Shown here: positions 4,874 through 62,504 of the stretch, one piece after another
Numbering within the stretch: position 1 is the stretch's first letter
Layout: every line of letters starts with the position of its first letter
Assembly: GCF_021869535.1 (NCBI RefSeq)
Contig: NW_026262581.1
Span: 115,568,001 to 115,632,000 of the forward strand
Source: Mytilus californianus
Lineage: Eukaryota
DNA length: 64,000 nt
Direction of reading: 5' to 3'
Position numbers and translations under genes: made by a program
The notes under the pieces: generated by a model
Database searches by the model: none
Seen by the model: the letters and a program-made list of their open reading frames with translations, nothing else
Told to the model about the DNA's origin: nothing

Positions 4874-6991
4874 AGGATTTAAACTAGGTAAAAAGATTCC
4901 ATAGACCACTTAGCTTGCATAACTATATAAGGTTTATTGTTTCCAAAATTAAGGTTAAATAATAAAAAAAAATCTAAGTCCCTCGTATATATTATTATAT
5001 AAAGATGAGTTGAGTTTTCCGATGATTATTTCCTACCAAAAATAATGTTGGAAACAAACAATGTAGAAAAATCAGACCGCTGAAAAGAAAGATCAATAAA
5101 TATAACAGGTAACTTTTGATTGCAGACAATTCCGTTCTAGAATTGTGTGCGATTGATCGATGAAATGTGATAACAATGTAGACATACGTAACCAGATACA
5201 AAATCAAATAGAGTCAATAGTTTATGTTTTAGCAGACCTTAGAAGTATGTCGATCACGCAGTCTGGCTCATCAGATATATTGTTCATGTTCTAACATACG
5301 TGCATCTTTAAAAAAAAAAGATAACGTTCAGCCAATAACATTAGTTCAAGGTGGTAAACAAAATCGAATTTAAAAAACGGCAAACAACGACATGGCCCAA
5401 ATTTAAAAGTTGAAAAGGCAAAAAACTGCCATTTCACACAACACTTAACAGATATTTAATGATTGAGCAACAAGAGAACCATTCAAAAAGAAAACACACA
5501 AACAAACAAACAACACCAAAACATCAGGTGAAAAAGTAGTATTTGTTGTTGCACCAGTCTACACCTTATGTTAAGCTCTAAGTCTCCTTTAGTAGGGACA
5601 TGTGGATACATTTTCATTATAACAGAGACTATGAAACATATTTTGCTTATATACAAAAATGCTGTGCAGTGTAAAAAAAAATAATATACTATATGCATAT
5701 AAACAACATCTGAACCTAGTACTTTTAATATCTATTGTGGATCGAGTAAATTACAGGCATCATGGGCATTGGGCTATCTTATAACTCATCCTTCTGTATT
5801 GAATCAAGCATAAACGAAAATCACGGAAGACACAAGAATCACATAAAAGTTTACCCAAATCTTGATAATGTAAATTTATATATATTTATTCTGAGCATCA
5901 ATTAAAATTAGCAGCTTACTCTGAAGGCAAAGGAACAGAAAAAACAATTTGTGAAAATCACAACTGCCATAGAGATATTTAAGTACTTAGGTATTAACTT
6001 AACCATTGTGAAGTATCTGTGTCACAGATTATCATGGATATGCTCCAATTGTCGTAGCCAAAATCGTTTGCTCATTCCTCGATTATAATGACGTAGGGTG
6101 CCACTGGCGGTGCCGGACCTTCCTATCGTTTCGGAGCACCCACGGACGTTTTTCTTTTTTGACAATAGTGGTGTAAGTTTTTCTTTGACATGATTGTCCT
6201 CTTGATATCTTTTGGATTTATTTTCTGTGAACCAATGAATAACGTTTAAACTGTGTTCTTTGAAGCCCGTCGTGATTTACATCTGGCCAAGCATTAAATA
6301 ATGGTATACTTGATACACGTTCTTATTATAAATTCAATTTCTTTCCAGTACTAATAACTTCGAGGACGATGCATATCTTTACATATCTTGTAATAGAAAT
6401 CTTGATAAATTAAGAAAAAAATACTTCCAATATAATATATAATCTGGTATTAAAATTGTCTACCTTTTTTCACCATTGACCATAGCAAAACAAAGCATTA
6501 AAGTAGTAGTATGTGTATGTTGAAGTCAATTATCACATTGACATCAGTGAAAATGTAATTACATATCATTTGAATGCCAAAGGGGTAACTATACTAACAA
6601 ATATACCATATGTTGAAGTGAAATAATAGTAAAGATAATAGGATCAATTTTCCAATTTTTGTATATAAAAACATAGTCAAATTTAACACAAACAGCTACA
6701 AATTAATCAGTTCATATGAGTATGCTTTGATACAAAATCAAACTGCTGAAAATCAGTATTTTTTTCCAAAATTTTAATGAAAAACTGAAAACTTTTTGTA
6801 CATAAAACTCCACTAAAAATTGTTTCTTTTTCGGATTTTTAAAATAATAATAATTATGTACATAGTGTATCTGTTCTGTATGTTTTTTTTCTGATCTAGC
6901 ATTTTCGCACTGACCCTCACTAGCACAGACAGATTCTTTGACACGATCTCCTATATTTATTTACACAACGCTGCAGAATTAACACATGGTT

Positions 6992-8499
6992 TTAATTTAT
7001 ATTTTTTTTGTTCAGTCTATGACTTTGAATATGGTGCTTCTTCGCTCTCAGGTTCTTATGTTTCATTCTTCTTTTATGTTTATTACGCATTCTCTTTTCC
7101 AGTCGTTGTTTTAATGTTTCATTGGCTCTGTTCTTTTCCCTCTTTCGGTTTAAGGCACCCGACTGGCGAGATAACTCCTGTTTCGCGGTCTTCAAATCAA
7201 TATTTCTATCTAAATGTCCATGAAGTGCTTTAAAATGCCTTTTCTGTGTTCCTTTAAGGTAATTCAAATTTTTATTTCTATTTCTCTTAATTTTGTGAAC
7301 GTTCGAAGGTATTCGTTTTACCCTTTCAGATCGTTTCAATCGCTTGACTAGGGAAAGTTCAATTGTATTCGGATCATGAAAACGTTTTACTCTTGAAAGA
7401 TCCTTTGCATGTAATGAAAATTCAACCGATCTTTGAGAACGCTTCATTCTAGACAAGCTCGGTTCGTAATGATCGACTGTCAAAGTTTTATATGGGGACC
7501 GTTTTAATCTTTTGACACGAGAGAGCATAAAAGAGTCCACCTCAAGATCTTTAAAACGTTTTGCTCTTGAGAGTTCTGGTAAAACTAGTTCACTGGCTCT
7601 TTTTGTCCGTTTTACACGTGATAAACCAGGTTTTAATGAGCGTTTTAAACGCTTAATTCTCGACAATTCACGTTCAGAGTGTTCGTCTCTTTGCATACGC
7701 TTTACTCTGGGAAGCACTGCATCTGTATCCTTCAGTCTCTTAACCCTTCTTAATTCATTTTCAAGTTGTAGTTCTGAAGGTTTTTCTGCTTCTCTTTTGG
7801 TGATTGTATGACTCTAAAAAACATAAATACAAAACTTATTTAAAGTAATAAAGCAACTGATTCAATGACATTAGCATAGTTTAGACTACAGGAGATAGAT
7901 CTAAAGAAAAATCAATCCCTTTGAAATACTGTATGTTAACAAAGCTTTCCAAAACATTGGTGTCGTAACATATACTATAATAGTCTGGATAAAAACATAT
8001 CAGTCGTCTCGTTGTTGTTTTGCATGACTGGATTGCCAAATTCTAATCAATTACTTGGATTTGGTTTGAATCTCGTTTTAATTTACCCTCTCTGTATCCC
8101 GTTTCCCCTCTTACATCATTGCATTATGCTGCTGTTTATTCTATGTTAAAAGGCAGTTTACAACAATCGAACTGACATTTAAAAGATATTTTGCAACCTC
8201 GAATTATGCCAAAATCACCTCATTAATTAAATAGTTTAAACATTAACGTTTGCATGTGTGCCCTTTATTATGTATCCATATTTACAAGATTTGAAATAAA
8301 TGTAGTCAATTGCAGTAACTTTCCTTTTTCTGAACAGACATAGTATTCATAAAAAAAAACGGAAAAATTAGTCAATCCAATGACGACGCAATACTCAATA
8401 AACTGTTTTTTTAGAATAATGAAAAAAATGTCTTACCCTTACTGTCTCTGTTAATGTCGAAAAACAGAATACAAGAACCAGAAACACAGGTACCACCAT
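6992..8499 (-). CDS. Secreted multi-basic-site precursor protein, 294 aa, unassigned family; exons 8499..8437 and 7813..6992
   Basis: Exon 1 encodes the hydrophobic signal-like MVVPVFLVLVFCFSTLTETVR and ends |gtaag. It joins in phase 0 to ttttag|AGT CAT..., an 822-nt open exon with 13 R-X-K-R motifs and a very basic K/R/H/N C-terminus. The ORF-track start at 7717 is an internal GTG. Confidence 0.8.
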
Positions 8500-10456
8500 G
8501 ATGCAGAAGGAATGAAATTTAAATTACATAACAACTGATTCAATTCTAAAATGTTAACAAACAGGCGATCAATAACAACAGCATCAACCCGCAAGAAAAT
8601 CTAATGTCGTCTGGCAACATAATCACGTGGTTTGATGTTATTAAAATCGATATATGGACAGCCGAGATTGTTGTAATGTATTGAATATATCAAGCCGTAA
8701 TTGTAAAATTTCATCTGAAAATCATTTCAATGAGAATATACAACTGCAAATTATTGCAGTTTTTTTATTTGGAATAAAAACATGTCGGCTGATTATAGAT
8801 TGATGTTTTGTTTATAAGGTAAAGAAAATGGATGGTGTTAGATTATTCAAACAACTCGAACATATTGATTTTAACTGGAATTTAAGAATTCAACTGATTT
8901 TGTTTTGTATATTTATGACTGAAAAAAATCTCTAAATAGACGAATAGTCTCTACAGAAAGTGAATCAGTGAAAATGATTTCGACATATACGCCTATTAGA
9001 CATTAATACCGGCTCTGTAACGCTCCTGGATTTGACAATAGCTATTACATATGAATTCGAGATCAAATGATTGGTGAAGCTGACAAAGCATACGCTACTA
9101 TCCTTGATGACGCAAGTGACAACCATTGAAGGTCATCTGTTTACTTTGATCTATGTTAGTCAGTTTTTACTGAATTCAAACTAGAATCTATGACAAATTT
9201 GATGATTTCAACTCCCCATTTTCCGACTGTGCACTTTTCCCGATTGTGTCATTTTGATTGAAGCTCAGATTGAAGGTGGATTTGCATTGGCGTACTCTGT
9301 CGACGCACACGATCTCGGTCTATTAGTTCATGAAATTCCCGCAGTTTTGGTTTGTTACCTTGATTTTTTCTTCTAAATTGATTGATGAGATTTGAACATC
9401 AGTATATAACTTATGCCTTAATTTACCTTCTATTTTTGCAAAAAAATGCGACATGATAGGTTTCGTAAAAAAAAATTAGCTTAGTCTCAATGGGCATAGA
9501 AAAAATTGTCACAAAGCAGACATCTCCACATTGAAACAATACTTTAGACAGTCGTACCACAACCTCGAAGATTTCAATCGTCCTGAACATGCATGTAATA
9601 TTTACCACTGGACGTTAAGCAACCAACAATCAATCAATCGAAAACTTCAACAACATGAAAGTTCTATTGATTGAACAGAACAGTCACTATAATGGTACCA
9701 TGCGGGAGGTTTAAGAAAGATTTTTGATAAAGGAACTTACATAACGTCCTTCATCAAGATGGACTAAACAGAAAGGAATAGCTAGGGTTTTTAGACGAAA
9801 TCATGCATCATTGGTATTTTTTATGTGAATATATTTTTTTTACATTTAGTCCTAGTATTACATTTTGAGATATTAGGATGATCATGTATAAGTACGCACT
9901 ATATTGGGACGTATATTGGATGTATAAGTACACACATACACGTATAACATACAAATGATTTTACTTTACATATCTTTTCATTTGAAAAAAAAATATTGAC
10001 ACTGTTTTATAATAATAATAATTAAGTATTAATTTACACTCTTTCTTTTAGTTCTTTTGACTTGATGCCCAAAATAGTACACCAAATATCTAAGAATAAG
10101 ATATTTAGATAGTTGTCATGTTTGCGATCATGCCACATCTCCTTTTTTTCATATATGTGAAACAATTTAAATGGAAAAAATAACGGGCTGATTTATGACA
10201 AAACACTAAACGAAGTACAAACATGACAGGATACAACCAACGATATCCACTGAATTACGGGCTCATGACTTGGGACAGGCACACCACTTGGTAACGAAGA
10301 TAAAGAAAATCCAAGTTAACCAGTGAGATGCAGTCTTAGTAGTATTCTGCACAGAAAAACGTTATTTTGTCCGAGTTGTCATTCTGTTTATAGAGAGTTG
10401 ATAGTACTCCAGTTAAATGTACATCTTTGACATCATGTTGAACTGGATATAGTTAA

Positions 10457-26600: not shown

Positions 26601-29249
26601 AAATAGCTTAACTCAATCAAAGGACATATTAACACCAGTGAACATACACTGAACAAATAAATTTGACCTATGATACAATGTAAATACAAAATAAATAAAC
26701 TAAGGGAAGAATAATAAAAGTAACATGTTATATCGGTATGAAATGTTAAACAGTTTAAGAAAAACAATATGCTCGAACAAAAATATCAGCCATTTGCAAT
26801 TACTTTAAACACAGGTAAATGAAAATAATTTTGTTGTTTGGTATACGTGTACAGTTCCAATAGAGAAAGGAAATATTTTTACAAAATAAATAGTTTTGAT
26901 GTTCTAGCTTGATAATACAATTAATTATCTAATTACTACCACAATTGTATATTAATAAGTATTGTAATTTTCATTGTTATTAATACATGTTATATCGGTA
27001 TTACAAACCTAATCTTGAACTCTATCCTATTTTTTGGAAATTTATAGAAATTTATATGTGACGTCACATTGTGCGTCGATCTCTTCGGCTAACATATAAT
27101 ACGTTGTTCGGCTGTGCTGATTTAGGTTGTTTTACGTATTTGTTTTTATTCTGTAGTAAGTCACCACTTCGGTGTTAACATGTATATCTATTATATAGTC
27201 ATTTTTATAAATTTACTGTTTGCAAAAGTATGAATTATTCTAAATACTAAGGATTTTCTTATCCCAGGCATATAACCTTAGCCGTATTTGGCACAACTTT
27301 TTGGAACTTTTGGTCCTCAATGCTCTTCAACTTTGTAATTTGTTTTGGTTTTCGAACTTTTTTTATCTGAGCATCACTGATGGGTCTTGTGAAGACGTAA
27401 CACGCGTCTGGCGTATTAAATTATAAGCCTTGTACCTTTTGATAGCTATTATTTGTGTATGTGTCTGTCCTGTATGTTCTCCCATTTTTTTGTATTGTAG
27501 TCCTGTCATGTAATCTTGTCATTTTAATGTTATATTTAACATTGCCATAAAAGCGGGAGGTTTGGCTAGCCACAAAACCAGGTTCAACCTACCATTTTTT
27601 CTTAAAATGTCCTATACCAAGACAGGAAAATGGCCATTGTTATATTATAGTTCGTTTCTGTGTGTGTTGCATTTTAGTGTTGTGTTTCTGTTGTGTCTTT
27701 GTTCTCTTATATTCGATGTGTTTCCCTCAGTTTTAGTTTGTAACCCGGATTTGTTTTTTTTTTCTCAATCGATTTATGAGTTTCGAATAGCGGTATACTA
27801 CTGTTGCTTTTATTTGAATCAGAAAGTTAAACTTTAAATACAAAACATCGGCAATTACCTCGGATCTTTTCCTCACTACTCGTGCAGAAAAAAACACGGT
27901 GACGAGTGTTACCCGCCCATATTGTGTTACCATTGTTCTGTATCTTCTTATATAAAAAAATTGGCATTACACAAGCCATCTTAAGACGACGATGTCTTAG
28001 ACTTAATCTTTACTTTAATGGATTTCGAAAAAAATGCTGATCTTAATTTTTTATATTCTGATTGTTTTCTTTGGTAGTTTAAAGTTGTATATGCTTTATA
28101 AAGTAAATCAGTTTATATTTTACCTCCATACAACATCCAGTTATTTTTCGATAATCCAAATAATGTTAAACTTGCGATAGAGGACACAAAACCAATTGAT
28201 ACAATCAATTCGTCTGTAATATTTTTGAAGCATATCTGTAAAACTTTAAGAATTATTGTTCCGCCTACAAACACTACAATATCATTGCAACCACTAAACC
28301 AACCGATATATTCTGAAGACCAACAAAATGGTGAACTCAATGTATATATCATTCTTATAGAGCTGCTTGCAGACAGTGACATCATATTAATAAAGAATAT
28401 TAACAAATACATCAAAACGTAATTTACACTGCGGGTTATATTTTCACTTCTGGTACACCAGGAAAATATTTCTCCGGGAGATATTGACATTTGTGTTTCT
28501 TCATTTTTTTTCCAAGTCTCATTTAAAGTGAATACCACTAAAATTACTAAGAAGAAAATAATCCCCCCTGAAATAGCGAAAGGATACATATAACCTGCAA
28601 AGTCTATCAGATATCCCGTACTTATATAAGAAAAGAAAATTCCAAATCCTAGTGATGCATCATATATAGCTAAAACAATCGTTCTTTCTTTTCCTTTTGA
28701 TGTTCCGTCTGCTAACAGTGACACACTTGCAATGTGGAAAGTATTGTATGTACCAGAAAGTCCTTCAACTGCAAATCCAAATAAAAAGTAATACAAATTA
28801 AGATCAAAGTAAATAGCTACCGCCTTCATTGCAAAGGAAATTGCCATAACTGTTAAATTCCATAGCAAAATCTTTTTCCGTCCTATTCTATCTACCATAG
28901 GTCCAACGAAAATAATAAATGGAATAGCAATTCCGTATTCGGCTAGTGTAATATACCATACCCAGTCGGACGCTATGGCCTGTATGTCATCGTCGGAAGT
29001 GCCATTTACAGTACAACTCTGAGATACAATTTTCGAATGATTCTGATTTGAATTCCCCATCGAATTTTTTGCAGAGTCGTGACTTTTAACGTAAGCATAA
29101 ATATATTGTGTCGTTGCGGAGCCGGAAATGGCCAAACCAAGAGTATTTATTATCACATATATCATAACTTTCCAGCGTGTACTTATCCATGTTGATTTTT
29201 GCTGTTGCCGAAGCTGTTGCTCATACAATAGCGGTTTGTGTTCCTCCAT
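23603..29249 (-). CDS. SLC46 family MFS transporter, copy B, 486 aa; exons 29249..28124, 25633..25550, 24555..24396, 23693..23603
   Basis: Motifs GPMVDRIGRK, EGLSGT, LLADGT and PFCWSSE. Exon phases match copies A and C; total 1461 nt open. Confidence 0.9.
25230..25563. repeat. Degenerate 26-bp minisatellite derived from the exon2/intron2 junction of SLC46 copy B
   Basis: 13 units of consensus tgtaccacttaccttgtttatcttga; the last unit (25538..25563) is the real splice junction. Confidence 0.8.
26212..26700. repeat. Interspersed repeat, same family as 48636..49090
   Basis: Shared ggtcaaagtacggtcttcaacacggagcctt...cctgacttaggacaggtgcaaacaaatgcagcggg...catagaaagacacactataaaatatcaa. Confidence 0.85.
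27165..27450 (+). mobile_element. Third copy (opposite orientation) of the hammerhead-bearing repeat
   Basis: Plus strand 27369..27414 reads gagcatca-CTGATGG-gtct-tgtga-agac-GTAA-cacgc-GTC-tggcgt. Confidence 0.6.
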
Positions 29250-29842: not shown

Positions 29843-32800
29843 CAAAGTACAACGGATCAACTCAGCCATCAATAACCAACTCCTCTGACAAAATAGACAC
29901 AAAGTACAACGGATCAACTCAGCCATCAATAACCAACTCCTCTGACAAAATAGACACAAAGTACAACGGATCAACTCAGCCATCAATAACCAACTCCTCT
30001 GACGAAATAGACACAAAGTACAACGGATCAACTCAGCCATCAATAACCAACTCCTCTGACGAAATAGACACAAAGTACAACGGATCAACTCAGCCATCAA
30101 TAACCAACTCCTCTGACAAAATAGACACAAAGTACAACGGATCAACTCATCCATCAATAACCAACTCCTCTGACGAAATAGACACAAAGTACAACGGATC
30201 AACTCAGCCATCAATAACCAACTCCTCTGACAAAATAGACACAAACTACAACGGATCAACTCAGCCATCAATAACAAACTCCTCTGACGAAATAGACATA
30301 AAGTACAACGGATCAACTCAGCCATCAATAACCAACTCCTCTGACAAAATAGACACAAAGTACAACGGATCAACTCAGCCATCAATAACCAACTCCTCTG
30401 ACAAAATAGACACAAAGTACAACGGATCAACTCAGCAATCAATAACCAACTCCTCTGACGAAATAGACACAAAGTACAATGGATCAACTCAGCCATCAAT
30501 AACCAACTCCTCTGACATAATAGACACAACTCCTCTGACAAAATAGACACAAAGTACAATGGATCAACTCAGCCATCAATAACCAACTCCTCTGACAAAA
30601 TAGACACAAAGTACAACGGATCAACTCAGCCATCAATAACCAACTCCTCTGACAAAATAGACACAACTCCTCTGACAAAATAGACACAAAGTACAATGGA
30701 TCAACTTAGCCATCAATAACCAACTCCTCTGACAAAATAGACACAAAGTACAACGGATCAACTCAGTCATCAATAACCAACTCTTCTGACGAAATAGACA
30801 CAAAGTACAACGGATCAACTCAGCCAACAATAACCAACTCCTCTGACAAAATAGACACAAAGTACAACGGATCAACTCAGCCATCAATAACCAACTCCTC
30901 TGACAAAATAGACACAAACTACAACGGATCAACTCAGCCATCAATAACCAACTCCTCTGACGAAATAGACACAAAGTACAACGGATCAACTCAGCCATCA
31001 ATAACCAACTCCTCTGACAAAATAGACACAAACTACAACGGATCAACTCAGCCATCAATAACCAACTCCTCTGACAAAAAAGACACAAAGTACAATCGAT
31101 CAACTCAGCCATCAATAACCAACTCCTCTGACAAAAATGACACAAAGTACTATGGATCAACTCAGCCATCAATAACCAACTCCTCCGACAAAATAGACAC
31201 AAAGTACAACGGATCAACTCATCCATCAATAACCAACTCCTCTGACAAAATAGTTACAAAGTACAACGGATCAACTCAGCCATCAATAACCAACTCCTCC
31301 GACAAAATAGAGACAAAGTACAACGGATCAACTCAGCCATCAATGACCAACTCCTCTGACAAAATAGACACAAAGTACAACGGATCAACTCAGCCATCAA
31401 TAACCAACTCTTCTGACGAAATAGACACAAACTACAACGGATCAACTCAGCCATCAATAACCAACTCCTCTGACAAAATAGACACAAACTACAACGGATC
31501 AACTCAGCCATCAATAACCAACTCCTCTGACAAAATAGACACAAAGTACAACGGATCAACTCAGCCATCAATAACCAACTCCTCTGACAAAATAGACACA
31601 AACTACAACGGATCAACTCAGCCATCAATAACCAACTCCTCTGACAAAATAGACACAAACTACAACGGATCAACTCAGCCATCAATAACCAACTCCTCTG
31701 ACAAAATAGACACAAAGTACAACGGATCAACTCAGCCATCAATAACCAACTCCTCTGACAAAATAGACACAAACTACAACGGATCAACTCAGCCATCAAT
31801 AACCAACTCCTCTGACGAAATAGACACAAAGTACAACGGATCAACTCAGCCATCAATAACCAACTCCTCTGACAAAATAGACACAAACTACAACGGATCA
31901 ACTCAGCCATCAATAACCAACTCCTCTGACAAAATAGACACAAAGTACAACGGATCAACTCAGCCATCAATAACCAACTCCTCTGACGAAATAGACACAA
32001 AGTACAACGGGTCAACTCAGCCATCAATAACCAACTCCTGTGACGAAATAGACACAAAGTACAACGGATCAACTCAGCCACCAATAACCAACTCCTCTGA
32101 CGAAATAGACACAAAGTACAACGGATCACCTCATCCACATTAACAAACTCCACTAACAAAATAAACACAAAGTACAACGGATCAACTCAGCCATCAATAA
32201 CCAACTCCTCTGACAAAATAGACACAAACTACAACGGATCAACTCAGCCATCAATAACCAACTCCTCTGACAAAAAAGACACAAAGTACAATCGATCAAC
32301 TCAGCCATCAATAACCAACTCCTCTGACAAAAATGACACAAAGTACTACGGATCAACTCAGCCATCAATAACCAACTCCTCCGACAAAATAGACACAAAG
32401 TACAACGGATCAACTCATCCATCAATAACCAACTCCTCTGACAAAATAGTTACAAAGTACAGCGGATCAACTCAACCATCAATAACCAACTCCTCTGACA
32501 AAATAGACACAAAGTACTACGGATCAACTCAGCCATCAATAACCAACTCCTCCGACAAAATAGACACAAAGTACAACGGATCAACTCAGCCATCAATAAC
32601 CAACTCCTCTGACAAAATAGACACAAAGTACAACGGATCAACTCAGCCATCAATGACCAACTCCTCTGACAAAATAGACACAAAGTACAACGGATCAACT
32701 CAGCCATCAATAACCAACTCCTCTGACAAAATAGACACAAACTACAACGGATCAACTCAGCCATCAATAACCAACTCCTCTGACAAAATAGACACAAACT

Positions 32801-34493
32801 ACAACGGATCAACTCAGCCATCAATAACCAACTCCTCTGACAAAATAGACACAAAGTACAACGGATCAACTCAGCCATCAATAACCAACTCCTCTGACAA
32901 AATAGACACAAACTACAACGGATCAACTCAGCCATCAATAACCAACTCCTCTGACAAAATAGACACAAACTACAACGGATCAACTCAGCCATCAATAACC
33001 AACTTCTCTGACAAAATAGACACAAAGTACAATGGATCAACTCAGCCATCAATAACCAACTCCTCTGACATAATAGACACAACTCCTCTGACAAAATAGA
33101 CACAAAGTACAATGCATCAACTCAGCCATCAATAACCAACTCCTCTGACAAAATAGACACAAAGTACAACGGATCAACTCAGCCATCAATAACCAACTCC
33201 TCTGACAAAATAGACACAACTCCTCTGACAAAATAGACACAAAGTACAATGGATCAACTTAGCCATCAATAACCAACTCCTCTGACAAAATAGACACAAA
33301 GTACAACGGATCAACTCAGCCATCAATAACCAACTCTTCTGACGAAATAGACACAAAGTACAACGGATCAACTCAGCCAACAATAACCAACTCCTCTGAC
33401 AAAATAGACACAAAGTACAACGGATCAACTCAGCCATCAATTACCAACTCCTCTGACAAAATAGACACAAACTACAACAGATCAACTCAGCCATCAATAA
33501 CCAACTCCTCTGACAAAATAGACACAAAGTACAACGGATCAACTCAGCCATCAATAACCAACTCCTCTGACGAAATAGACACAAAGTACAACGGATCAAC
33601 TCAGCCATCAATAACCAACTCCTCTGACGAAATAGACACAAAGTACAACGGATCAACTCAGCCACCAATAACCAACTCCTCTGACAAAATAGACACAAAG
33701 TACAACGGATCACCTCATCCATCAATAACAAACTCCACTAACAAAATAAACACAAAGTACAACGGATCAACTCAGCCATCAATAACCAACTCCTCTGACA
33801 AAATAGACACAAACTACAACGGATCAACTCAGCCATCAATAACCAACTCCTCTGACAAAAAAGACACAAAGTACAATCGATCAACTCAGCCATCAATAAC
33901 CAACTCCTCTGACAAAAATGACACAAAGTACTATGGATCAACTCAGCCATCAATAACCAACTCCTCCGACAAAATAGACACAAAGTACAACGGATCAACT
34001 CATCCATCAATAACCAACTCCTCTGACAAAATAGTTACAAAGTACAACGGATCAACTCAGCCATCAATAACCAACTCCTCCGACAAAATAGAGACAAAGT
34101 ACAACGGATCAACTCAGCCATCAATGACCAACTCCTCTGACAAAATAGACACAAAGTACAACGGATCAACTCAGCCATCAATAACCAACTCTTCTGACGA
34201 AATAGACACAAACTACAACGGATCAACTCAGCCATCAATAACCAACTCCTCTGACAAAATAGACACAAACTACAACGGATCAACTCAGCCATCAATAACC
34301 AACTCCTCTGACAAAATAGACACAAAGTACAACGGATCAACTCAGCCATCAATAACCAACTCCTCTGACAAAATAGACACAAACTACAACGGATCAACTC
34401 AGCCATCAATAACCAACTCCTCTGACAAAATAGACACAAACTACAACGGATCAACTCAGCCATCAATAACCAACTCCTCTGACAAAATAGACA
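29843..34493. repeat. 57-bp minisatellite array, about 81 units, 4.65 kb, with higher-order block duplications
   Basis: Unit acaaagtacaacggatcaactcagccatcaataaccaactcctctgacaaaatagac. Diagnostic variant blocks recur at offsets of about 1.2, 1.6, 2.55 and 2.78 kb. Confidence 0.97.
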
Positions 34494-34700: not shown

Positions 34701-37700
34701 TCAAGATGGCGTATCGGAATTTTGTATTTGCGGATTATCGATGTCTAACTCGATTGGATCTTTTGTCGAATTTGTCTTGCATGTTACAAATCTGAAATGA
34801 CATAATTAAAATCGTTCAAATATTTCAACATACATGTGCATCTAGATGCTGTGGATTCATAATACCTCCATAATACATTATTATGTATGTTGTACACAAA
34901 GATGGTAACGCAACGTTCTCATAAGTACATAAAACTGATTTGTAAATAAGTATATTAATATAAAATTTTAACAACTAAAGAAAGAAGCGTTTGTTTTTTT
35001 TTTTTTATCTTTCTCAAGAACTTGTATCAAAGCTAACATTATTCATAACACATTCTATACAAATGTGTCGTTACTATGAACAAAAGGAGAAATGGGATAG
35101 GAGCCAAAACATGTCTAGAGGTCGACCATATTCTAAGGTCGACAAGAAACAAATGTCTATGCAAAATATGTCAAGCTCTAAATTTTCTCGAATGTAGAAA
35201 AGATGCGAATGCTTTTAATGATAAATCTAATATATTCGGTAAAAAACTCATCAGAGCTTATGTTTGTATGTTTCATGCTATGCCGAATCAAAATAAAATT
35301 GTCTATGACAAAAAAAATCAAGTCATAATTAAAGACATGAGACATGCACATATACTACTCATGACCCACTCACTGTTAATTTCCCATGTAATCAATCAAA
35401 CATGCTATTTAAGTTCCTTTGACAGTGTCATTATTTTTAATCATAAGACTATTTTCTCAACTTAGAATGATTCTTAAAGTTAATTCCAGTATCTTTTTAA
35501 CATCTTCGTTTACTGTGATTTGTGATGTCAACGCACAACTGTTTTTTTTTATATAAACTTACATCATCATAACAAGAGCTATGAAAGGAAATCCTGCCAT
35601 TACAAAGAATACAAATCCTTTGTGTAATGTAACTGTATGATGATAGATGTTATTAAATATGGTAGATCCAAAAATTGTACAAATTGTATCTAACAGATAT
35701 ATATTTGAAAAAAGTGCACCTGAAAGTAGAAAATAAAGAATTGTATTAGTATTGTAACCTATTGACAGTAATGAAATGTAGGAAAACTGTGTTCTTCCAG
35801 CAAGAAAGTCTAAGCCAAGGAGGAATAAAGTAATCATTATTCAATCAATAGTAAAATTGACCTATTTTTGATATGACTATGGAATCAGCTGACTTGTAAA
35901 TAATGCTTTACAGGAGATGTTAACTCTATCGACGCACCAAGGTTCACTTCTGATAGGGTTTATGTGGTACCAATTATTTTCACCCCATGTTTGTTTTTTA
36001 TATTTAGTATTTCATTTGAAATGATGTATTAATACCATCTTCATACACTTGTTATAAAATGTAACTTAAAGATGAGGTAGAGATATTTTTACGTAACATT
36101 TGAAATTTACGAACTGTTTTAACATAAACAAAAAAAAACATTTGTTTGTCGTTTTTTTTTTTATATAAAATTTACAATGTGCATTGTCGCATTTGTTCTT
36201 ATACTTTATGTTACCTTGTTTATCTGGATGCACAGCTCTGGATAAAATGGCTTTGATCAAAGGTATTGGAAGAATCTTTAGAATACCAACTGCTGCAGCT
36301 ACAAACATGTAGAAAATAAGAAACCAGTTGAAATATATCAATGTTTAAAGTTTGACAAGACTACGTGTCGAAATAATGTATCGTACTCAAAGCAATTTTA
36401 GGATTTCTAACAAAATAATCGCATAATTTGTTTTACACTAATTTTCAATGTGCTAGTATACATTTTATACGGGAAGGACACAGTGTAAATATATTTTTAA
36501 AGATAAAATCTTAATGAAAAGACATTTTGTATTCCGTTTATGAAAGAAGGACTTCGTAACCAATGATCAAACAAATATTATACCTTTGATTTAAATAATC
36601 AAGAATTTTCTAATTATACCACAGACATTTACCCAATGGACTTGACATTCCATAAACCTAAAATGAACAACACAATTGTCCTTTTCTAGATTTTGATACT
36701 TCAGTTTTATAAGACTAACTCTATTACGACAAAAAGACGATCTTTCCTTCTTTTTTTTTTACTTAATTCCTTTGATCTGTTCTTACGGTTTGCATCTTTT
36801 CCAACTCGGTCGCTTTGTCCGTATCTGTAGTTATGTCTTTGAAATCTATGTATAATTTATTTTAACTGGTAAATCATTAAGTTATGGATGTTATTACCAC
36901 AAATTACTAAAAATCTTTACCTTTTAAATCATTTAATGAATACAATGATTTCCTTTGACTGTAGAAATCTTACCTCAGACGGAATTTCACATGCAGATTT
37001 AGCTTATTTAAGCTTCTAGCCCCGGTTTTTGATGGGGTTCGTGTTGCTCAGTCTTTAGATTTCTGTGTTGTGTTTTGTGTACAGTTGTTTGTATTTTTGT
37101 AGGTTTTTTTTTTTTGCCCTGGCGTTATCAGTTTATTTTCGACTTGTGGTATCTTTCGCATCCGTTTATAAGCCGTAATTTAAGATACTTTTTTTTCTTT
37201 TGTACGCCGTAATTTAAGACACGTTATTTTTTTTTCTTGTAGTTAGAACTGTGAAATTGTCTGTAAGAGTACTAAAATTAATTTCATTTTTTAAAGATAA
37301 ATATATAACTAAACACACATTGCTATTTGGTTATAAAAGCCTTATTATCTACGATTTTAACAGTATAATTTGAAAAATTACAGGAGGGTTGTTAATTCTT
37401 CAAACTTTTACAAGAATGGAATATTGAATAATGATTCACTATTAACAATCAGTATGGTTACATTTTTTTTTTTCAAAATAAGATAAAAAAAAAACAAACT
37501 TCCCTGCTACATTCTCATTACAATGCAAGCAATTACGTCACACTGGCCAAGTTCCCTAAAACCACGTTTCATTGCAATAGCTCCAATTACGTAAAACTAT
37601 GTTGGTTTAGTGGAGTATCGCCAATTTATTGGATATCTCTTATTCACTAAACCTAATGTGGCGTATCACTTACATTCATATATCATCCAATCATTCGTAG

Positions 37701-38808
37701 ACAATCCGAAGAGTATGTAACTCGCAACAGATGATAATAAACCGAATATTACAACCAGTTCATCAGTAATATTTTTGAAACATATCTGCAAAATTTTGAG
37801 AATAACTGTTCCACCTACAAACACTAAAATAGAACTACCAGCACTAAACCACCCGATGTGTTCCGAAGACCAACAAAATGGTGAACTCAAAGTAAATATC
37901 GTTGTTATAGATCCTGACGATGGCATATTATAAATTAAGAATATTATTAAATAAATTAAAATATAACTAACACCACGGCTTATGTTTTCTACATTTGTAA
38001 ACAAGGAAAATATTTGTCCTAAAAACGCCGACACTTTTATTCGACTTTCCGTTTCATGATGCACCAGAGATTCGTCTAAAGTAATTGCTACTAAAATTGT
38101 AAAGAAGAAAAATATTCCACCTGAAATAGCAAATGGATAAATAAAACCTGTGAACTCTATTAAATATCCTGTCCCTATAAAAGAAACGAAAGCTCCTAAT
38201 CCTATTAGCGCATCATATATCACCATAACAATAGTTCTATCTTTTCCTTTCGATGTTGTATCCGCTAGTAATGCACAACATGCTATACTGAATATGGAAA
38301 ATGTTCCAGAAAGTCCTTCAATTGCGAATCCAACTAAAAAGTAATACAAGTTCAGTTTCAAATAAATAGTAAGTGTTTTAACTGCAAACGAAAGAGTCAT
38401 AAGTGATAAATTCCATAGTAAAACTGGTTTACGACCTATTCTATCTACCAAAGGTCCAATGAAAACAATAAATGGAATTGCAATTCCGTATTCGGCTAGT
38501 GTAATATACCATGACCAGTCGGCCGATATCGCTTGTATTTTATAGTCGGAAGTACCATTTGCACTACAACTCTCATTTTTTGAAAAACTGTTATTTGAGT
38601 TCGTTGCCGAGTTATTTGCAAAGTCGTGACTTTTTACATATTCATAAATATATTGTGTTTGTGCTGAGCCTGCAATGAGTAAAGCAATCGTATTGATCAT
38701 CGCATATATCATCACTTTCACACGTGTGCTTATCCATTTTGGCTTCAGCTGTTGTTCGATCTGTTGCGCTTTCAGTAGAGGTTCGTGCTCATTTCCGCGG
38801 AACTCCAT
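34701..38808 (-). CDS. SLC46 family MFS transporter, copy C, 488 aa; exons 38808..37674, 36298..36215, 35719..35563, 34791..34701
   Basis: Motifs GPLVDRIGRK, EGLSGT, LLADTT and PFCWSSE. Exon 2 (84 nt) and exon 4 (91 nt) have the same lengths as in copy B. AATAAA on the minus strand at 34574..34579. Confidence 0.9.
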
Positions 38809-56153: not shown

Positions 56154-56885
56154 ATGTCAGAGAAGAAAATACGAGACTATTTACCAAAATCAAGACCGCC
56201 CTCAGTTGGCATAAAATCATTAACACCCGTCGTACTCTCCGACAGTAAAGGGGTCTATCTAAAGACCCAAGCCTATCATCCTGAAGACAAACAAATTATA
56301 TGGTGGAATAAAAGTGGAGCAAACATCAAAAACTCCCTACACTGGCTGGAGAGAAACATCAAAAGCAAAATAAAAGAATTGGGAAATATACATTTATACA
56401 TTTGGCTCGGAACATGCTACCTGACCTCAAAAAATAAAGACCGTACTATATCATTGGCAAGCCAACATTCTTCAGCAGCTAATAATATATTTGAAGATCT
56501 TAAAAAATTTCAAACACTAGTTCAACAATACCCAAACTCCAGATTAACATTCGTCGAAATTCCACACTATTCAATAACCAAATGGAACGCTCGAGCTAAA
56601 AACCCGTCTACTGAAGACCACATCAATCAAGACCAAGATTTACATGAACAGATAGTCGAAATAAATAAGAAAATTCAAGAACTGAACGCCTCCCTCAAAG
56701 TACAATCACCACTTCTTAATCTACACCTAAAAGCAAGTAAAAAGGTCAAAAGAGGCAAAGATAAACCGCGCAAGCAGTATATTAATTATCAGCTTTACCT
56801 CGATGGGATACACCCTAAGCCTATATTAGCCAAAGCTTGGCTCGCTGAATTCTCTACTCAGATCAGGACAGACTGTTGGCATTAA
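56154..56885 (+). CDS. SGNH/GDSL esterase-like ORF of the LINE, 243 aa
   Basis: Block I VVLSDS, block II SGA, block III IWLGTC and block V DGIHP in the expected order and spacing. Confidence 0.8.
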   Translation: MSEKKIRDYLPKSRPPSVGIKSLTPVVLSDSKGVYLKTQAYHPEDKQIIWWNKSGANIKNSLHWLERNIKSKIKELGNIHLYIWLGTCYLTSKNKDRTISLASQHSSAANNIFEDLKKFQTLVQQYPNSRLTFVEIPHYSITKWNARAKNPSTEDHINQDQDLHEQIVEINKKIQELNASLKVQSPLLNLHLKASKKVKRGKDKPRKQYINYQLYLDGIHPKPILAKAWLAEFSTQIRTDCWH

Positions 56886-57013
56886 ACAAAAACATAGTAT
56901 ATTTGGTGTGGATCAGAAGGCATGGGATGACCAAGCCACGCTGCTGAAGCACTAAGTATATTATTGAACATTTTCAACAGTCCGAACGAGAAACAACAAT
57001 CAAACGTATAAAC

Positions 57014-59025
57014 ATGGCTGCCCTAGTCGCTACAAGTAAATCACGTACTAGATCTAGAACCGTGGCAAATAAAGAATTTTGTATCCAAAATTACACCTTA
57101 AACATCACAAAGGCTATTAATAAAAAACTTGAGGCTACCAAAAGAAATATAAGTGTTGAATATAAACACACCAAAGGAGGGTTAGTACTAACGGCGGATG
57201 CGGTTACATTTGAATTGCTCAAACTAGCAACATTAAGCTACTTTGAAAACTTTGCCGAAAGCAAAGGCCAAGCAACCATCAGAGAAATAACAGATAGGTC
57301 ACAAACAACAGTAGTACAGCATATAGTCAAAGTGTCAGCAAATAAAGACAGCTATACAATTAACATATACAACACTACTAGCCGGCTATTAATTAATGGA
57401 AATGGTGCTAACAAATTCTTGGACAATGACATAAATAACATACATAACATTGTACTCAAAAGCCTACAAGAGCAAGGAGTTGAAGGACTGAGCACAGAAG
57501 AGCTGTATAGACAACTTGGCAACCAGTTGCAAAATCTTCTACACAAAGACAACAACTCAACCAACAGAAGAGAGACTAATGAAAAACTGGAAGTAGAAGA
57601 CGGCAATGAAACATGCACTAAATGCAATAAAAGATGCAAAACAAGGAGCACCTACTGTAATAAAGGAAGCCACTGGGTCCACTATAAGTGTCAAAAACTA
57701 AGTGAGCTGGAGATACAGAGAGCAGAAAACTCTAATGGTGATGAATATTATGAATGTAAACTCTGCATTGCTGCAAAATCAAATATACTAGCTCTAGAAG
57801 GAGGTACACAGAGCCACACAAATGCTCAGTTGCTGCTCGCAGAGGAAACTGAAGCTAAGAGAGGATACAACTCAGACGAGACACCCGACACACCTCCAGA
57901 AGAGCAAAATTGTACAGTATGTGATAATATACTTATGAATCCTGAATGGGATATATGCGAACAATGCAATAGCAAGTGCCACTTCAAGTGTATGACAGAA
58001 ATAAGCACAGCATACATATGCATACCCTGCATAATGATCCAAGACGAGTTACAACTTAAAACTCAAGAAAATGACAAAATCACAGCTAGTCCAAGTATAT
58101 GCAACAACACCTGCATTAAAAGCCCAATGAAATATCACGTAAACCAACGTCTGTGATAGCAACATCAACAACAAAGCCAAAACCAATACCAAAACCTAGG
58201 AAATTAAAACAAAATCAGAAAAGCTCTGAGCCTGAGGATGCAATCTTACCTAAACTGAGTGAATTAAGAGCAAGAGAACTCAAAGTAAGAAAAGCAGAAG
58301 AACAATTAAAAATCAAAGAGAAGTCCCTCAATGAGATACAAAATGATAGAGTACTATTAGAGTCCAGATGCCAACAGCTAGAGGCAAGAAACTTCGAACT
58401 AGAACAGACTGTTAAGCTGCTCAAGAGAAGAATAGAGTCGAATAGCAACCTAACTATACCGACATTGACCAACTCCAAGGAGTCAATGCAAGGCAACCAA
58501 GATAGTTTTCATAAAATGAAAGAGCAACTCGATGAAAAATTAGCAAAGCTATATACTAAACTTTCAAACATTGTGATAGATGAAATGGGTCGACAAATTG
58601 ACAAAATCAAGCCCTTTGATGACTGTCTACATACATCTGAAGAAAGATTAAAGGCAACCCAAGGGATGGAAGACGGAAACGTTCCTAGTAATATCAAAAA
58701 GCCTCAAAAGGAGAATATAGCAAATACATGTATCAGACAAGCAACACAACAGTTAACAGGACAACCCCTGATCTACAAACCACAAACGCCAAAACATCAA
58801 GGCCAGTACTATAACGCACCAGTATACATGCCAAGTTCAACAGTGGAAGCCCAAAAGAATGAACACCACGACGCTCGCCACATACAACCTTGGGCAAATA
58901 ACTGCTTGTACCCCCCAGTTCGTAATATGAATGTACAGAAACAAACAAGCCTAAGGAATACTACACAAACTCTAGTTCAACAGCCTTTTTTAGCAGTACA
59001 GAGCCTCAACCCAAGCCATATGTAA
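57014..59025 (+). CDS. LINE ORF1 (two PHD fingers plus coiled coil), split by a frameshift near 58118 into 57014..58156 and 58153..59025
   Basis: CTKC...C..C..WVHYKC...YECKLC and CTVC...CEQC...CHFKC...ICIPC are PHD patterns; LRARELKVRKAEEQLKIKEKSL...LEARNFELEQTVKLL is a heptad region. One extra A in attaaaagccc would fuse the two ORFs. Confidence 0.75.
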
Positions 59026-62000
59026 CCAACAAATCAAGCGTCAAAACACCAGAGAGTTCCCAACTGCATCTAATTTCATTTAACTGTAAAAACATAAAAA
59101 CCTGTGGTCCAATAATACACAAACTCCTACAATCTAACGACATAATTCTTATTCAGGAACATTGGCTATTTCAAACACAGATACATCTTCTTGGCGAAAT
59201 CCACGAAAACATAAATTACATAGGCAAAGGAGTTGATGTAAACGAACCACTGTTACCGATATGTATGCCCCGAGGATATGGAGGAGTGGCTATCTTGTGG
59301 AAGAGAGAAATTGACCACTTGATAAAGCCAATCGAACTAGGGTCAGAAAGGATACAGTGTGTGGAAATAAATGAAAACAACAATCCAAACATAATATTAA
59401 CATCAGTTTATCTGCCAGCAAAAGGGAGTAAAAATCATCTGTCTGAATACCAAGAAGTTATCGATCAATTATACGAACTATACCAAAAGTATAATGAAAC
59501 GCACAAAATCATCATAGGAGGCGATCTAAATGAAGATCTAAATATACAAACAGGCACGAAACGCAACCTCTATCTCCGTGATTTCATAAATGAATGCAAC
59601 CTGAAATACGACAATAGAGAAAGGACCTTTGTTAACTCACTTGGGCAGGAATCATCAGAAATAGACTATTTTCTGCACAAGCTGCCAGAAAATGAATTTG
59701 TCAACAAACAAGTACTCAACAACGTGACAGAAAACACATCCGATCATCACCCAATTCGTATGAGTACCAAATTCAGTTACGAATGCGCAAATATCAGTCA
59801 TGCGCAAGCTAGCAGCAAAATTGCAAAAAGGGTCAATTGGGACAAAGTAGACAAAGAATGGTATTCTGCTCACATCAACATGCATATAGACAGCCTCCAG
59901 ATAAGAGAAAATATGGAAGAAACATCAATTGAGCAAGCCACAACCAAATTATGTGAACTTCTTAGAGAAACAGCTAACCTAACATCATCATCAAAGGCAA
60001 AATTCAACGCAAAGCCGAAATTAAAAGTATGGACGCCCGAAATACAAGTAGCGTTGAAAATTGCAAGGCAAAAATATAATGTTTGCAAACATCACGGGAG
60101 ACCCAACAACAAAAGTAACGTAATGCTCCAGGAGAAAAATCAAACTAAGAAGAACGTCCGTCGGGCAATAAGAATAGAGATTGCTAAAATAAGAGACAAG
60201 GAGAAGGAAAATATTCTCGAAACAAGAGTAAAGGATACAAAAATGTTCCATAAACTCGTACGTAACAACAGGAAGAAAGGAAATGTAATCACGGAGCTAG
60301 AGGTTAACGGAGTCAAATACACAGAAAGTGAAAATATCATCACTGGATTTGAGGAACACTTTAGAAATCTAGCAACATTTAATAACCAGACAGACATAGA
60401 TAGCACATATCATAACCAAGTTGAAGATGATATTCAGAGTATAAACCGACTCGTGCAACGTAATAACATCAGAAACGTAACGCACAATGAAATTACAAAT
60501 GCAATCAGATCAATAAACAGAGGTAAATCTGCGGATTTCCAGGGCATAACCATCGAACATATTATCCATGCAGGATCCGACATAGAAACAACGTTAGTAA
60601 CACTCGTGGAATGTATCTTCAAGCACGGAATTGTATCAGCATCATTAAAAATGGGACTACTAACACCAGTTTTCAAAAATAAAGGAGCAAGACAGCAAGC
60701 TACCAACTATAGAGGAATTACAGTGCTACCAGTCATAGGCAAAATAATTGAAACCGTCATCAAAGAGCGTACGAATAACAAAGTATTAGAAACACAAAAT
60801 AAAAGACAGAGAGGTTTCACTGCAGGATCATCACCAATGAACTCAGCGCTGCCAATAGAAGAAAGTTACAGAGAATCCAACGACAACAACACAACTTTCC
60901 ACCTGGTACTCTTAGATGCCAAAGCAGCATTTGACACTGTTATTCATAGTCATATGCTCAGAAGAGTTTTTATGTCAGGAATTGATGATGGACACTGGGG
61001 ACTGATCAAAGATCTACATGAAAACGCTAAAAGTGCTATTAAATGGGAAGGAAACATCTCGCAGCCATTCAACGTTAACCAGGGAGTGCGACAAGGAGGT
61101 ATACTTAGCACCAATCTCTACAAAATATACATCAACCAGCTATTAAACATGTACGAAACAACTGAGGCAGGATATAGAATAGGAAACATAAGTGTAAATA
61201 GTACTGCATGTGCAGATGACATCGCACTAATTAGTGAAGAACCAGACCAAGCGCAACTGCTTATAAACATGGCATGTGATTATGCATATATGGAAGGCTA
61301 CCAATTACAACCTACCAAAAGTGTAGTCCTCAACGTAACCAACAGGAAGCGAAAACATGACCCCGAAACAACAACCTTTACTATGGGCCCCCACGAAATG
61401 CCATCAGTGAAGAGTGCCACACACTTAGGAATCATCAGAACCACGTCACTAAAAGAAAACATGACTGCTAACGTGGAGGAAAATATAAAAAAAGCAAGGA
61501 GAAGCGCATATAGCCTCCTTGGAAGAGGATTTCATGGTCATAACGGATTAGATGTAGAGACAATGGTGCATCTATACAAAATATATGTATCTCCAGTACT
61601 TCTCTATGGTCTAGAGCTAGTATTACCAACAGCAAGCTCATTAGCACTAGTCGAAAACTTCCAAAAAAAGCTACTTAAGCAAATACTTTCACTACCAACT
61701 TGCGTAGCAGATATAACTATTAACATCTTAACCGGAATACTACCAATAGAAGCCCAACTACATATCCGAGCACTTGGACTATTCAACAACATCTGTAAAC
61801 AGCCCGAAGAAAGCATAGAAAAATCACTAGCTAGACGACAACTTATCCTAAAAAACAACCAAAGTTCTAGTTGGTTTGTCGCTATAAAACATATGCTCAG
61901 GAAGTACGATCTACAAGAGGCTACATGGTATCTGGATAACCCCGTAAAAAAATCCTTATGGACCTCAAACATCAAGAGAACAGTACATAACTACTGGAGT

Positions 62001-62504
62001 AAACCAATAGTGCAACTACTGCCACTATATAATGGACTGGACCATCTCACAACAGGAAACCTGGAAAAAGGGAAAATTCATCCTCTGTTCAAAATTAACT
62101 GCCATTCAGCCATAGATACGACAACACTACCAGTTAAACTTAAGCTGCTTACTGGATCCTATATACTACAAAGCAAACGTATAAAAATGTACAAGGACGA
62201 AACCGATCCGAAATGCCTTCTATGCTCAAAGGATGACGAAACTGTGACCCATTTCATATTAAAATGTGAACAACTCCATAATGTAAGGAATAAGATACTA
62301 CTAGAAACAGGTGTTGTACTAGACAGTCTTGGAATCAAATTTAATGAACTTTTGGACAATGAAAAGTTGCAATTAATTCTGGACATCACACCGGTTGCAA
62401 CATCAAGAAAACTCTCTCCAGCCAGTGTAGCAAAAGTAGAACGCCTAACTAGACGCTTGATATACCAGCTACATATAGCCCGTTATAAGATAGTATGCGG
62501 TTGA
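58986..62504 (+). CDS. LINE ORF2: APE endonuclease, reverse transcriptase and C-terminal zinc knuckle; frame open upstream of the first ATG (59265)
   Basis: ISFNC...LIQEHW (upstream of ATG 59265), GGVAILW, GGDLN, IDYFL, SDHHPI; RT QRGF, LDAKAAFD, GVRQGGILS, CADD; CLLC...ETVTHFILKC. No stops over 1079 aa from ATG 59265. Confidence 0.92.
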   Translation, partial: FFSSTEPQPKPYVTNKSSVKTPESSQLHLISFNCKNIKTCGPIIHKLLQSNDIILIQEHWLFQTQIHLLGEIHENINYIGKGVDVNEPLLPICMPRGYGGVAILWKREIDHLIKPIELGSERIQCVEINENNNPNIILTSVYLPAKGSKNHLSEYQEVIDQLYELYQKYNETHKIIIGGDLNEDLNIQTGTKRNLYLRDFINECNLKYDNRERTFVNSLGQESSEIDYFLHKLPENEFVNKQVLNNVTENTSDHHPIRMSTKFSYECANISHAQASSKIAKRVNWDKVDKEWYSAHINMHIDSLQIRENMEETSIEQATTKLCELLRETANLTSSSKAKFNAKPKLKVWTPEIQVALKIARQKYNVCKHHGRPNNKSNVMLQEKNQTKKNVRRAIRIEIAKIRDKEKENILETRVKDTKMFHKLVRNNRKKGNVITELEVNGVKYTESENIITGFEEHFRNLATFNNQTDIDSTYHNQVEDDIQSINRLVQRNNIRNVTHNEITNAIRSINRGKSADFQGITIEHIIHAGSDIETTLVTLVECIFKHGIVSASLKMGLLTPVFKNKGARQQATNYRGITVLPVIGKIIETVIKERTNNKVLETQNKRQRGFTAGSSPMNSALPIEESYRESNDNNTTFHLVLLDAKAAFDTVIHSHMLRRVFMSGIDDGHWGLIKDLHENAKSAIKWEGNISQPFNVNQGVRQGGILSTNLYKIYINQLLNMYETTEAGYRIGNISVNSTACADDIALISEEPDQAQLLINMACDYAYMEGYQLQPTKSVVLNVTNRKRKHDPETTTFTMGPHEMPSVKSATHLGIIRTTSLKENMTANVEENIKKARRSAYSLLGRGFHGHNGLDVETMVHLYKIYVSPVLLYGLELVLPTASSLALVENFQKKLLKQILSLPTCVADITINILTGILPIEAQLHIRALGLFNNICKQPEESIEKSLARRQLILKNNQSSSWFVAIKHMLRKYDLQEATWYLDNPVKKSLWTSNIKRTVHNYWSKPIVQLLPLYNGLDHLTTGNLEKGKIHPLFKINCHSAIDTTTLPVKLKLLTGSYILQSKRIKMYKDETDPKCLLCSKDDETVTHFILKCEQLHNVRNKILLETGVVLDSLGIKFNELLDNEKLQLILDITPVATSRKLSPASVAKVERLTRRLIYQLHIARYKIVCG

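Follow-up and report, generated by a model that had tools for sequence, protein, structure and literature searches.

A spliced and expressed mussel gene encodes a predicted secreted polyprotein conserved at its L-x-R-x-K-R cassettes rather than in its spacers

A minus-strand gene in a 64,000-nucleotide stretch of the Mytilus californianus genome (hereafter, the window) reads as a secreted polyprotein in which a short basic cassette, L-x-R-hydrophobic-K-R, recurs between spacers, and it raises the question of which part of such a protein matters to the animal: the peptides that cutting would release, the basic tail behind them, or the cut sites themselves. R-x-K/R-R is the furin consensus, and exposed sites of this type in secretory proteins are normally cut. 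A first-pass annotation had proposed the gene from its sequence and recognized no known molluscan precursor in it. Here, we ask whether the gene is real and expressed, to what it is related and where in the protein selection has acted, and we weigh the candidate functions against these results.

Gene structure and expression

The RNA evidence comprises one raw stranded run (X24) and contigs from three other studies (X1, X5, and X7), aligned to positions 6600-8800 of the window. Fifty-seven X24 reads with 35 different start positions skip exactly 7814-8436, a joint (7813|8437) that reads CT..AC on the plus strand, that is, GT..AG on the minus strand; one contig each from X1, X5, and X7 contains the same joint. 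Coverage spans about 8600 to about 6760, and the RNA depth over 6600-8800 is zero in the intron and on the opposite strand. The gene is thus real, transcribed from the minus strand and spliced once. The first-pass annotation had staked its two-exon model on the joining of 8437 to 7813, and that model was right in its coordinates and strand, with the ATG at 8499, exon 2 beginning at 7813, and the stop at 6992.

Exon 1 (about 8599-8437, minus strand) carries a 5'UTR of about 100 nt and 21 codons of the putative signal peptide (ATG 8499 to 8437). RNA depth begins near 8599-8610, and orthologous transcript contigs from M. coruscus align over 8579-8437. The 623-nt intron (7814..8436), of phase 0, lies immediately behind the signal-peptide codons, with its donor GT at 8436-8435 (sequence GTAAGA) and its acceptor AG at 7815-7814 following a pyrimidine-rich tract. 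The coding part of exon 2 (6992..7813) consists of 273 codons and a TAA stop (6994-6992), so that the two exons together encode 294 residues (21 + 273). The 3'UTR (6760..6991) is delimited by the RNA depth profile and contig ends; transcript ends are scattered over about 6760-6830, the orthologous contig L001 aligns down to 6831, and an ATTAAA is present in the sequence read.

Among 10.3 million sampled X24 reads, 555 match this ≈1.2-kb mRNA, corresponding to ≈54 reads per million, a rate that marks solid expression. The M. coruscus transcript contigs align as the same two exons, full-length spliced contigs are found in at least 15 M. coruscus runs, and full-length contigs recur in runs of several studies and in two species. 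The M. coruscus genomic gene measures 1489 nt for a coding sequence of 885 nt, and the two-exon layout is therefore common to both species.

The gene has no paralogue detectable by tblastn within the 64-kb window and is single copy there. Its neighbors on the minus strand include an ORF at 2443-2967 that matches the sodium:neurotransmitter symporter family (SNF, E = 5e-60) over its first 131 positions and is probably the first coding exon of a neighboring transporter gene, as well as three paralogous MFS_1 ORFs of 378-400 aa (20145-21347, 28113-29249, and 37666-38808) that form a tandem transporter cluster. A minisatellite at 29843-34493 contains about 81 copies of a 57-bp unit with 89-96% matches and has a very strong strand skew (GC skew -0.48 to -0.50, AT skew +0.45); its unit length is divisible by three, and long ORFs consequently run through it on both strands. 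A LINE-type retroelement occupies 56154-62504 on the plus strand, where three ORFs without Pfam matches precede a 1079-aa ORF with endonuclease, reverse transcriptase, and zf-RVT domains, and where the AT skew is raised. None of these neighbors suggests a function for the cassette gene.

Signal peptide, cassette array, and basic tail

We infer that the N-terminal 21 residues act as a signal peptide because they contain a 12-residue hydrophobic core (V-V-P-V-F-L-V-L-V-F-C-F) followed by small residues at -3/-1 (T-E-T), and because canonical signal peptides occupy the same place in the distant relatives P0035, P0041, P0044, P0045, P0048, and P0055 (see below). A hydrophobic N-terminus is kept in the homologues. 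The secretory character claimed in the first-pass annotation is therefore in line with what looks like a conserved signal peptide.

A recount of the 273 residues of exon 2 yields the motif numbers given before, namely 13 R-x-K-R sites, six of the form LSRxKR, no Cys, and no Gly amidation donor (no G-[KR]-[KR]); it further gives 20 KR pairs, eight L-x-R-x-K-R cassettes, and no Trp. These numbers far exceed what composition provides. Over 5000 composition-preserving shuffles, R-x-K-R occurs 0.98 times on average (maximum, 6) versus 13 observed, and L-x-R-x-K-R 0.12 times (maximum, 3) versus eight observed. A recent tandem DNA duplication was considered as the source of the cassettes and rejected: Tandem Repeats Finder (TRF) reports no tandem repeat, matches between copies are only motif length (≈20 nt), and the six LSRxKR copies differ in synonymous codons, so that the cassettes are not a young DNA repeat.

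Exon 2 begins with a conserved N-terminal piece (7736..7813), S-H-x-I-x-K-R and then an acidic stretch ending in L-x-L-E-N-x-L-R-R-V-K-R, which is kept in mytilids, the scallop, Gigantopelta, and unnamed relatives. All 13 R-x-K-R sites fall within the cassette array (7313..7753), where the eight L-x-R-x-K-R cassettes are joined by a copy decayed at P4 (LSLVKR). Many sites are doublets, with a hydrophobic residue behind the first site and Ser, Asp, or Ala behind the second x-K-R; four of the R-x-K-R sites are the second half of such x-K-R doublets, and two more follow-on sites read x-Q-R. Behind the array lies a tail of 106 residues (6995..7312), the K/R/H/N-rich C-terminus already remarked on in the first-pass annotation, with 35 Lys and Arg, nine His, 14 Asn, a pI of 12.0, and a hydrophobic fraction of 0.25. 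It holds no R-x-K-R, an absence that is not significant, as 69% of shuffles also lack the motif there. Near its end, a His-rich element (7004..7042) reads K-K-H-H-I-Q-S-H-R-L-N-K-K, a nonapeptide between dibasic pairs; it is the most conserved element outside the cassettes and is invariant across all mytilid homologues, and K-H-H-[IV]-Q-x-H is found again in the scallop protein P0044 and in P0055/P0056, in each case at the C-terminus or close to it. The A8 run at 7001-7009, which encodes the C-terminal N-K-K, has an extra A in 21 of 86 X24 reads. The extra base would shift the frame of the last few codons and may be a heterozygous allele or homopolymer slippage.

Relatives of the mussel protein

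The closest relatives are orthologues in other Mytilus species, of 294 and 293 aa and annotated as "uncharacterized": P0001 from M. coruscus (294 aa, 92% identical), two from M. edulis (86% and 83%), and one from M. trossulus (85%). By these identities, M. coruscus is the nearest of the three to the species of the window. Searches with exon 2 also retrieve unnamed transcripts that are 43-50% identical and belong to less closely related mussel-like animals; some of these transcripts come from metagenome collections. The family was assembled by searching proteins three times with a word index and once, exhaustively, with a profile against 1.84 billion representatives. The profile search adds a protein of the gastropod Gigantopelta aegis (XP_041348496.1, auto-named "trichohyalin-like"), the scallop Mizuhopecten yessoensis LOC110456206, and several unnamed ENA/Logan proteins; further searches add P0054-P0056. 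It also returns, at E = 3e-5, a protein of the hemichordate Ptychodera flava auto-named "ATRX homolog," to which hhalign assigns a probability of 95% with a score resting on the repeated motif alone, and which is a possible homologue. Within this set, P0055 and P0056 are compact Logan transcripts of 222-224 aa with about five cassettes and a clear K-R-H-H-V-Q-H-H-R; their cluster comprises 48 member sequences and thus represents a well-sampled animal.

Several matches are fragments that lack one end, and the family plan was read from the full-length members. It consists of a signal peptide, a K-R and an acidic stretch ending in L-x-L-E-x-x-L-x-R-V-K-R, a variable number of units (E)-(P)-E-L-x-R-[V/M]-K-R, to which x-[K/R]-R is often appended, and a long, basic, His-rich tail that in bivalve-type members has K-H-H-[I/V]-Q-x-H near its end. 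Outside the mytilids, the tail is only loosely alignable. Copy number has expanded inside the precursor in Gigantopelta, P0040, and P0046. In the Gigantopelta protein, an 11-aa unit, [G/R]-D-[D/E]-x-E-L-S-R-V-K-R, recurs about 17 times in near-identical form, an array with the classical sequence look of a multicopy peptide precursor.

That this was no known molluscan precursor, as first supposed, is borne out by the Pfam, protein, profile, and literature searches, none of which leads to a characterized family. An hmmscan of exon 2 against Pfam-A matches no family at E up to 10, and no member of the family contains a Pfam domain. The relatives returned by the word-indexed and profile searches are only unnamed or auto-misnamed ("trichohyalin-like," "ATRX homolog"). 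A feature-based search of the ESM Atlas with exon 2 and with full-length P0001 provides nothing to follow, its highest score (0.78) falling on an unrelated chordate cluster, and the literature search found no paper with the motif strings, predicted peptides, or accession numbers of the family. Judged by these searches, the proteins form an undescribed family whose conservation extends over at least four species of Mytilus and to molluscs more remote from them.

Distribution of selective constraint

Measured against the transcript of M. coruscus, cassette codons have a dN/dS of 0.10, spacers one of 0.46, and the tail one of 0.14, values that rest on small numbers of nonsynonymous changes (1, 13, and 8, respectively). 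In a comparison with four distant mytilid sequences, identity is 91% at the basic cassette residues and 100% (30/30) at the P6 Leu; it is 44% at P5, 42% at P3, 44% in the spacers, and 46% in the tail. A logo of 162 primary sites from 16 members has Leu at P6 in 74% of sites (33/44 in mytilids, 87/118 in other relatives) and little information at P5 and P1'. Behind the second x-K-R, mytilids have Ser, Ala, Gly, or Asp, and the other relatives have Asp, Ser, or Ala in 26 of 38 cases. An amphipathic-helix reading of L-x-x-V-x-x-L (P6, P3, and P1') as a family feature was discarded, as relatives outside the mytilids lack a hydrophobic P1'.

The variants present among the RNA reads agree with a cassette-centered pattern. 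At position 7693, where the reference encodes M-Q-R, all 73 reads and all orthologues have M-K-R; the sequenced reference individual therefore carries a less canonical second site. At position 7399, 20 of 38 reads turn the P6 Leu of K-D-L-S-R-V-K-R into Phe (heterozygous), and M. coruscus has Phe at P6 of a different cassette, so a Leu/Phe exchange at P6 is tolerated. The remaining polymorphisms lie in spacers or in the tail.

By these sequence comparisons, purifying selection falls mainly on the L-x-R-x-K-R(-x-K-R) cassettes and the basic tail, and not on the spacers. To the question left by the first-pass annotation, whether LSRxKR or the spacers are conserved, the alignments thus answer that the cassette, with P6 Leu, P4 Arg, P2 Lys, and P1 Arg foremost, and the tail are, and that the spacers are not. 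Such a pattern is consistent with released peptides that share a C-terminal L-x-R-hydrophobic end, and it is equally consistent with selection on convertase recognition itself.

Predicted structure and candidate functions

An AlphaFold2 model was built for the 294-aa orthologue P0001 as a full-length proxy, using a 20-sequence alignment, and has an overall pLDDT of 56 and a pTM of 0.20. pLDDT is below 50 over most of the cassette array, which is probably disordered, although helices are drawn over some cassettes; in the tail, one basic helix is predicted with pLDDT 79-92 (residues about 250-280). The helices over the cassettes, together with the charge pattern that the NCBI auto-name "trichohyalin-like" of the Gigantopelta member reflects, would fit a protein that stays uncleaved and whose alternating acidic and basic blocks form extended charged helices, as in a structural or adhesive secreted protein. 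The low model confidence in that region speaks against this, as does the difficulty of seeing how thirteen exposed furin consensus sites would escape cleavage, and the invariance of exactly P6, P4, P2, and P1 would go unexplained. We consider an uncleaved protein highly improbable.

Our preferred reading, to which we assign a probability of roughly 0.5, is that furin-type convertases cut the polyprotein into short, nonamidated peptides with an L-x-R-hydrophobic end and a basic tail. Furin-type cutting is suggested by established convertase biology applied to a disordered secretory protein with 13 R-x-K-R sites. The 21-residue signal peptide would route the chain into the secretory pathway, in the late part of which the disordered N-terminal two thirds would meet furin-type proprotein convertases and be cut at R-x-K-R. 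Carboxypeptidase trimming would then leave about ten nonamidated peptides with the shared end (E)-L-x-R-V/I/M; K-K/K-R cuts could further free the conserved H-H-I-Q-S-H-R-L-N from the tail, and the peptides, the tail, or both would act outside the cell. Cleavage and trimming in silico give about ten peptides of 9-18 aa with net charges of -2 to +2, ending in L-x-R-V/I/M/A; the x-K-R doublets yield single residues in addition, and a tail of ≈100 aa free of R-x-K-R remains. Since R-x-K-R sites need no neuroendocrine convertases, such processing would be possible in any secretory cell.

The processing model draws together the splice joint and solid expression, the excess of motifs over chance, the cassette-centered selection, and the predicted disorder of the array, and the ≈17 near-identical units of Gigantopelta resemble a multicopy peptide precursor. 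Other observations weigh against it. An amidation signal is lacking, and conservation of the spacers is poor, an unusual state if the spacers were the active parts. Hydrophobic P1' residues, which are unfavorable for furin cleavage, follow many of the first sites. Conserved P6, P4, P2, and P1 with free P5 and P3 are also what protease docking alone would select, and the released peptides therefore need no sequence-specific function.

A rival reading, raised in the first-pass annotation, in which the gene is a classical neuropeptide or pheromone precursor of neurons or neurosecretory cells and the (E)-L-x-R-V/I/M-OH peptides are ligands of a dedicated receptor, seems unlikely. A predicted signal peptide, multiple dibasic-flanked units with a shared C-terminal motif, and copy-number expansion within the precursors of Gigantopelta, P0040, and P0046 speak for it. 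However, the sites are of the furin type R-x-K-R and not plain KR, amidation is lacking, and P5 and P3, which would lie within the supposed pharmacophore, are no better conserved than the spacers. Moreover, the motif strings of the scallop relative are absent from the supplementary text of a 63-gene scallop ganglion neuropeptide catalogue, and those of the oyster relative from the supplements of an oyster ganglion neuropeptide catalogue, as far as the portions of these two sources consulted extend; these absences count against the processing model too.

The conservation of the tail raises another possibility, that the array is a disposable pro-region and the ≈100-aa C-terminal polypeptide, or pieces of it, is the cargo, binding metals or polyanions (microbial surfaces, mucus or matrix glycans, nucleic acids) in a host-defense or matrix role. 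Favoring this are the low dN/dS of the tail (0.14), the K-H-H-[IV]-Q-x-H element that is invariant or common across the family, the confidently predicted basic helix, the position of all 13 R-x-K-R sites upstream of the tail with none inside it, and the recurrence of full-length contigs across several studies and two species. Yet a hydrophobic fraction of 0.25 is low for a membrane-active peptide, the absence of R-x-K-R from the tail is what most shuffles also give, the tail aligns only loosely outside the mytilids, and the invariant P6 Leu of the cassettes is left unexplained. We regard the tail as cargo as an unlikely alternative to the processing model.

In a further reading, the cassettes are tight-binding pseudosubstrate heads through which a PC1/3- or PACE4-like convertase of the secretory pathway would be buffered or inhibited, making the protein a multiheaded invertebrate analogue of proSAAS. 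L-[S/x]-R-[V/I/M/A]-K-R is present eight times in exon 2 and conserved, and LSRVKR differs only at P5 from the proSAAS-derived hexapeptide LLRVKR, an inhibitor of PC1/3 with nanomolar Ki. Variants at P5 (LMRVKR, LKRVKR, and LYRVKR) have been reported still to inhibit PC2 with sub-micromolar Ki, and RVKR peptides extended by Leu inhibit PACE4. Conservation of the P6 Leu equals that of the basic residues, with P5 and P3 left to vary; docking of P6, P4, P2, and P1 into the S6, S4, S2, and S1 pockets would thus keep these positions invariant while the released stretches drift. P1' is often Leu or Phe, and in proSAAS, RVKR is likewise followed by Leu. A secreted, disordered protein of ≈290 aa would also resemble both 7B2 and proSAAS. 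Set against this, the mussel protein has no sequence relation to either: exon 2 matches neither the ProSAAS family (PF07259) nor the 7B2/secretogranin V family (PF05281) in Pfam-A at E up to 10, and no vertebrate proSAAS is among the matches of the profile search (1.84 billion representatives). A molecule with nine or more heads and adjoining, well-cleavable x-K-R-Ser sites looks more like a substrate, and the likeness rests on a six-residue motif that is simply a good cleavage site too. A regulatory role is, in our estimate, decidedly unlikely.

The endogenous convertase regulators described so far are 7B2 for PC2, which is ancient, and proSAAS for PC1/3, reported only in vertebrates. The conserved unit of the cassette gene and the inhibitory hexapeptide of proSAAS are a single residue apart, and the gene therefore offers a well-expressed and easily synthesized candidate for PC1/3-type control in invertebrates. 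If the gene instead encodes a plain precursor, it would define a new molluscan family of nonamidated peptides with an L-x-R-hydrophobic end, together with a conserved His-rich C-terminal peptide, a family that is not listed in the consulted portions of the bivalve neuropeptide catalogues and that is directly searchable by mass spectrometry. The pattern also shows that conservation in a repeat protein can lie at the cut sites instead of in the products.

Comparison with known systems

Multicopy invertebrate neuropeptide precursors of the FMRFamide or pedal-peptide type have a signal peptide and many short units between dibasic sites. The mussel protein follows the same unit plan, with an N-terminal signal peptide by sequence features and repeated units flanked by mono- or dibasic convertase sites, and in both cases copy number varies between species. 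It differs in lacking a Gly amidation donor, in conserving the cut site and P6 and not the peptide body, in its full furin-type R-x-K-R sites, which are often doubled, and in its long conserved basic tail. Outside the nervous system, furin- or kexin-type processing of repeat proteins is known from Drosophila Baramicin, honeybee apidaecin, and fungal KEX2-processed proteins, in which the repeated peptides are conserved and active. The mussel protein would share with these a secreted repeat architecture, R-x-[KR]-R or KR sites, many small (putative) products, and possible production in non-neural cells; it has no sequence relation to them, and its spacers diverge. With linear cationic antimicrobial precursors, the comparison turns on the tail, with its pI of 12.0, low hydrophobic fraction, and single confidently predicted basic helix.

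Among convertase regulators, 7B2 (SCG5) is likewise a small, disordered secretory protein cut by furin (putatively so in the mussel), and it occurs in invertebrates. 7B2 has a dibasic-containing, convertase-inhibiting C-terminal peptide of its own and an architecture without repeats, and its Pfam family is not matched by the mussel protein. proSAAS (PCSK1N) is closer in outline, being secreted, largely disordered, about 250-290 aa long, and cut by furin-type enzymes (again putative in the mussel), with L-L-R-V-K-R where the mussel protein has L-S-R-V-K-R, often then Leu. The two differ in that proSAAS has one inhibitory hexapeptide and the mussel protein eight or more cassettes, and they have no detectable homology; proSAAS has been reported from vertebrates only (PMC7481362). 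The mussel family sits within the known class of convertase-processed secretory repeat proteins, and what is unusual about it is that conservation falls on the cut-site cassette and not on the products.
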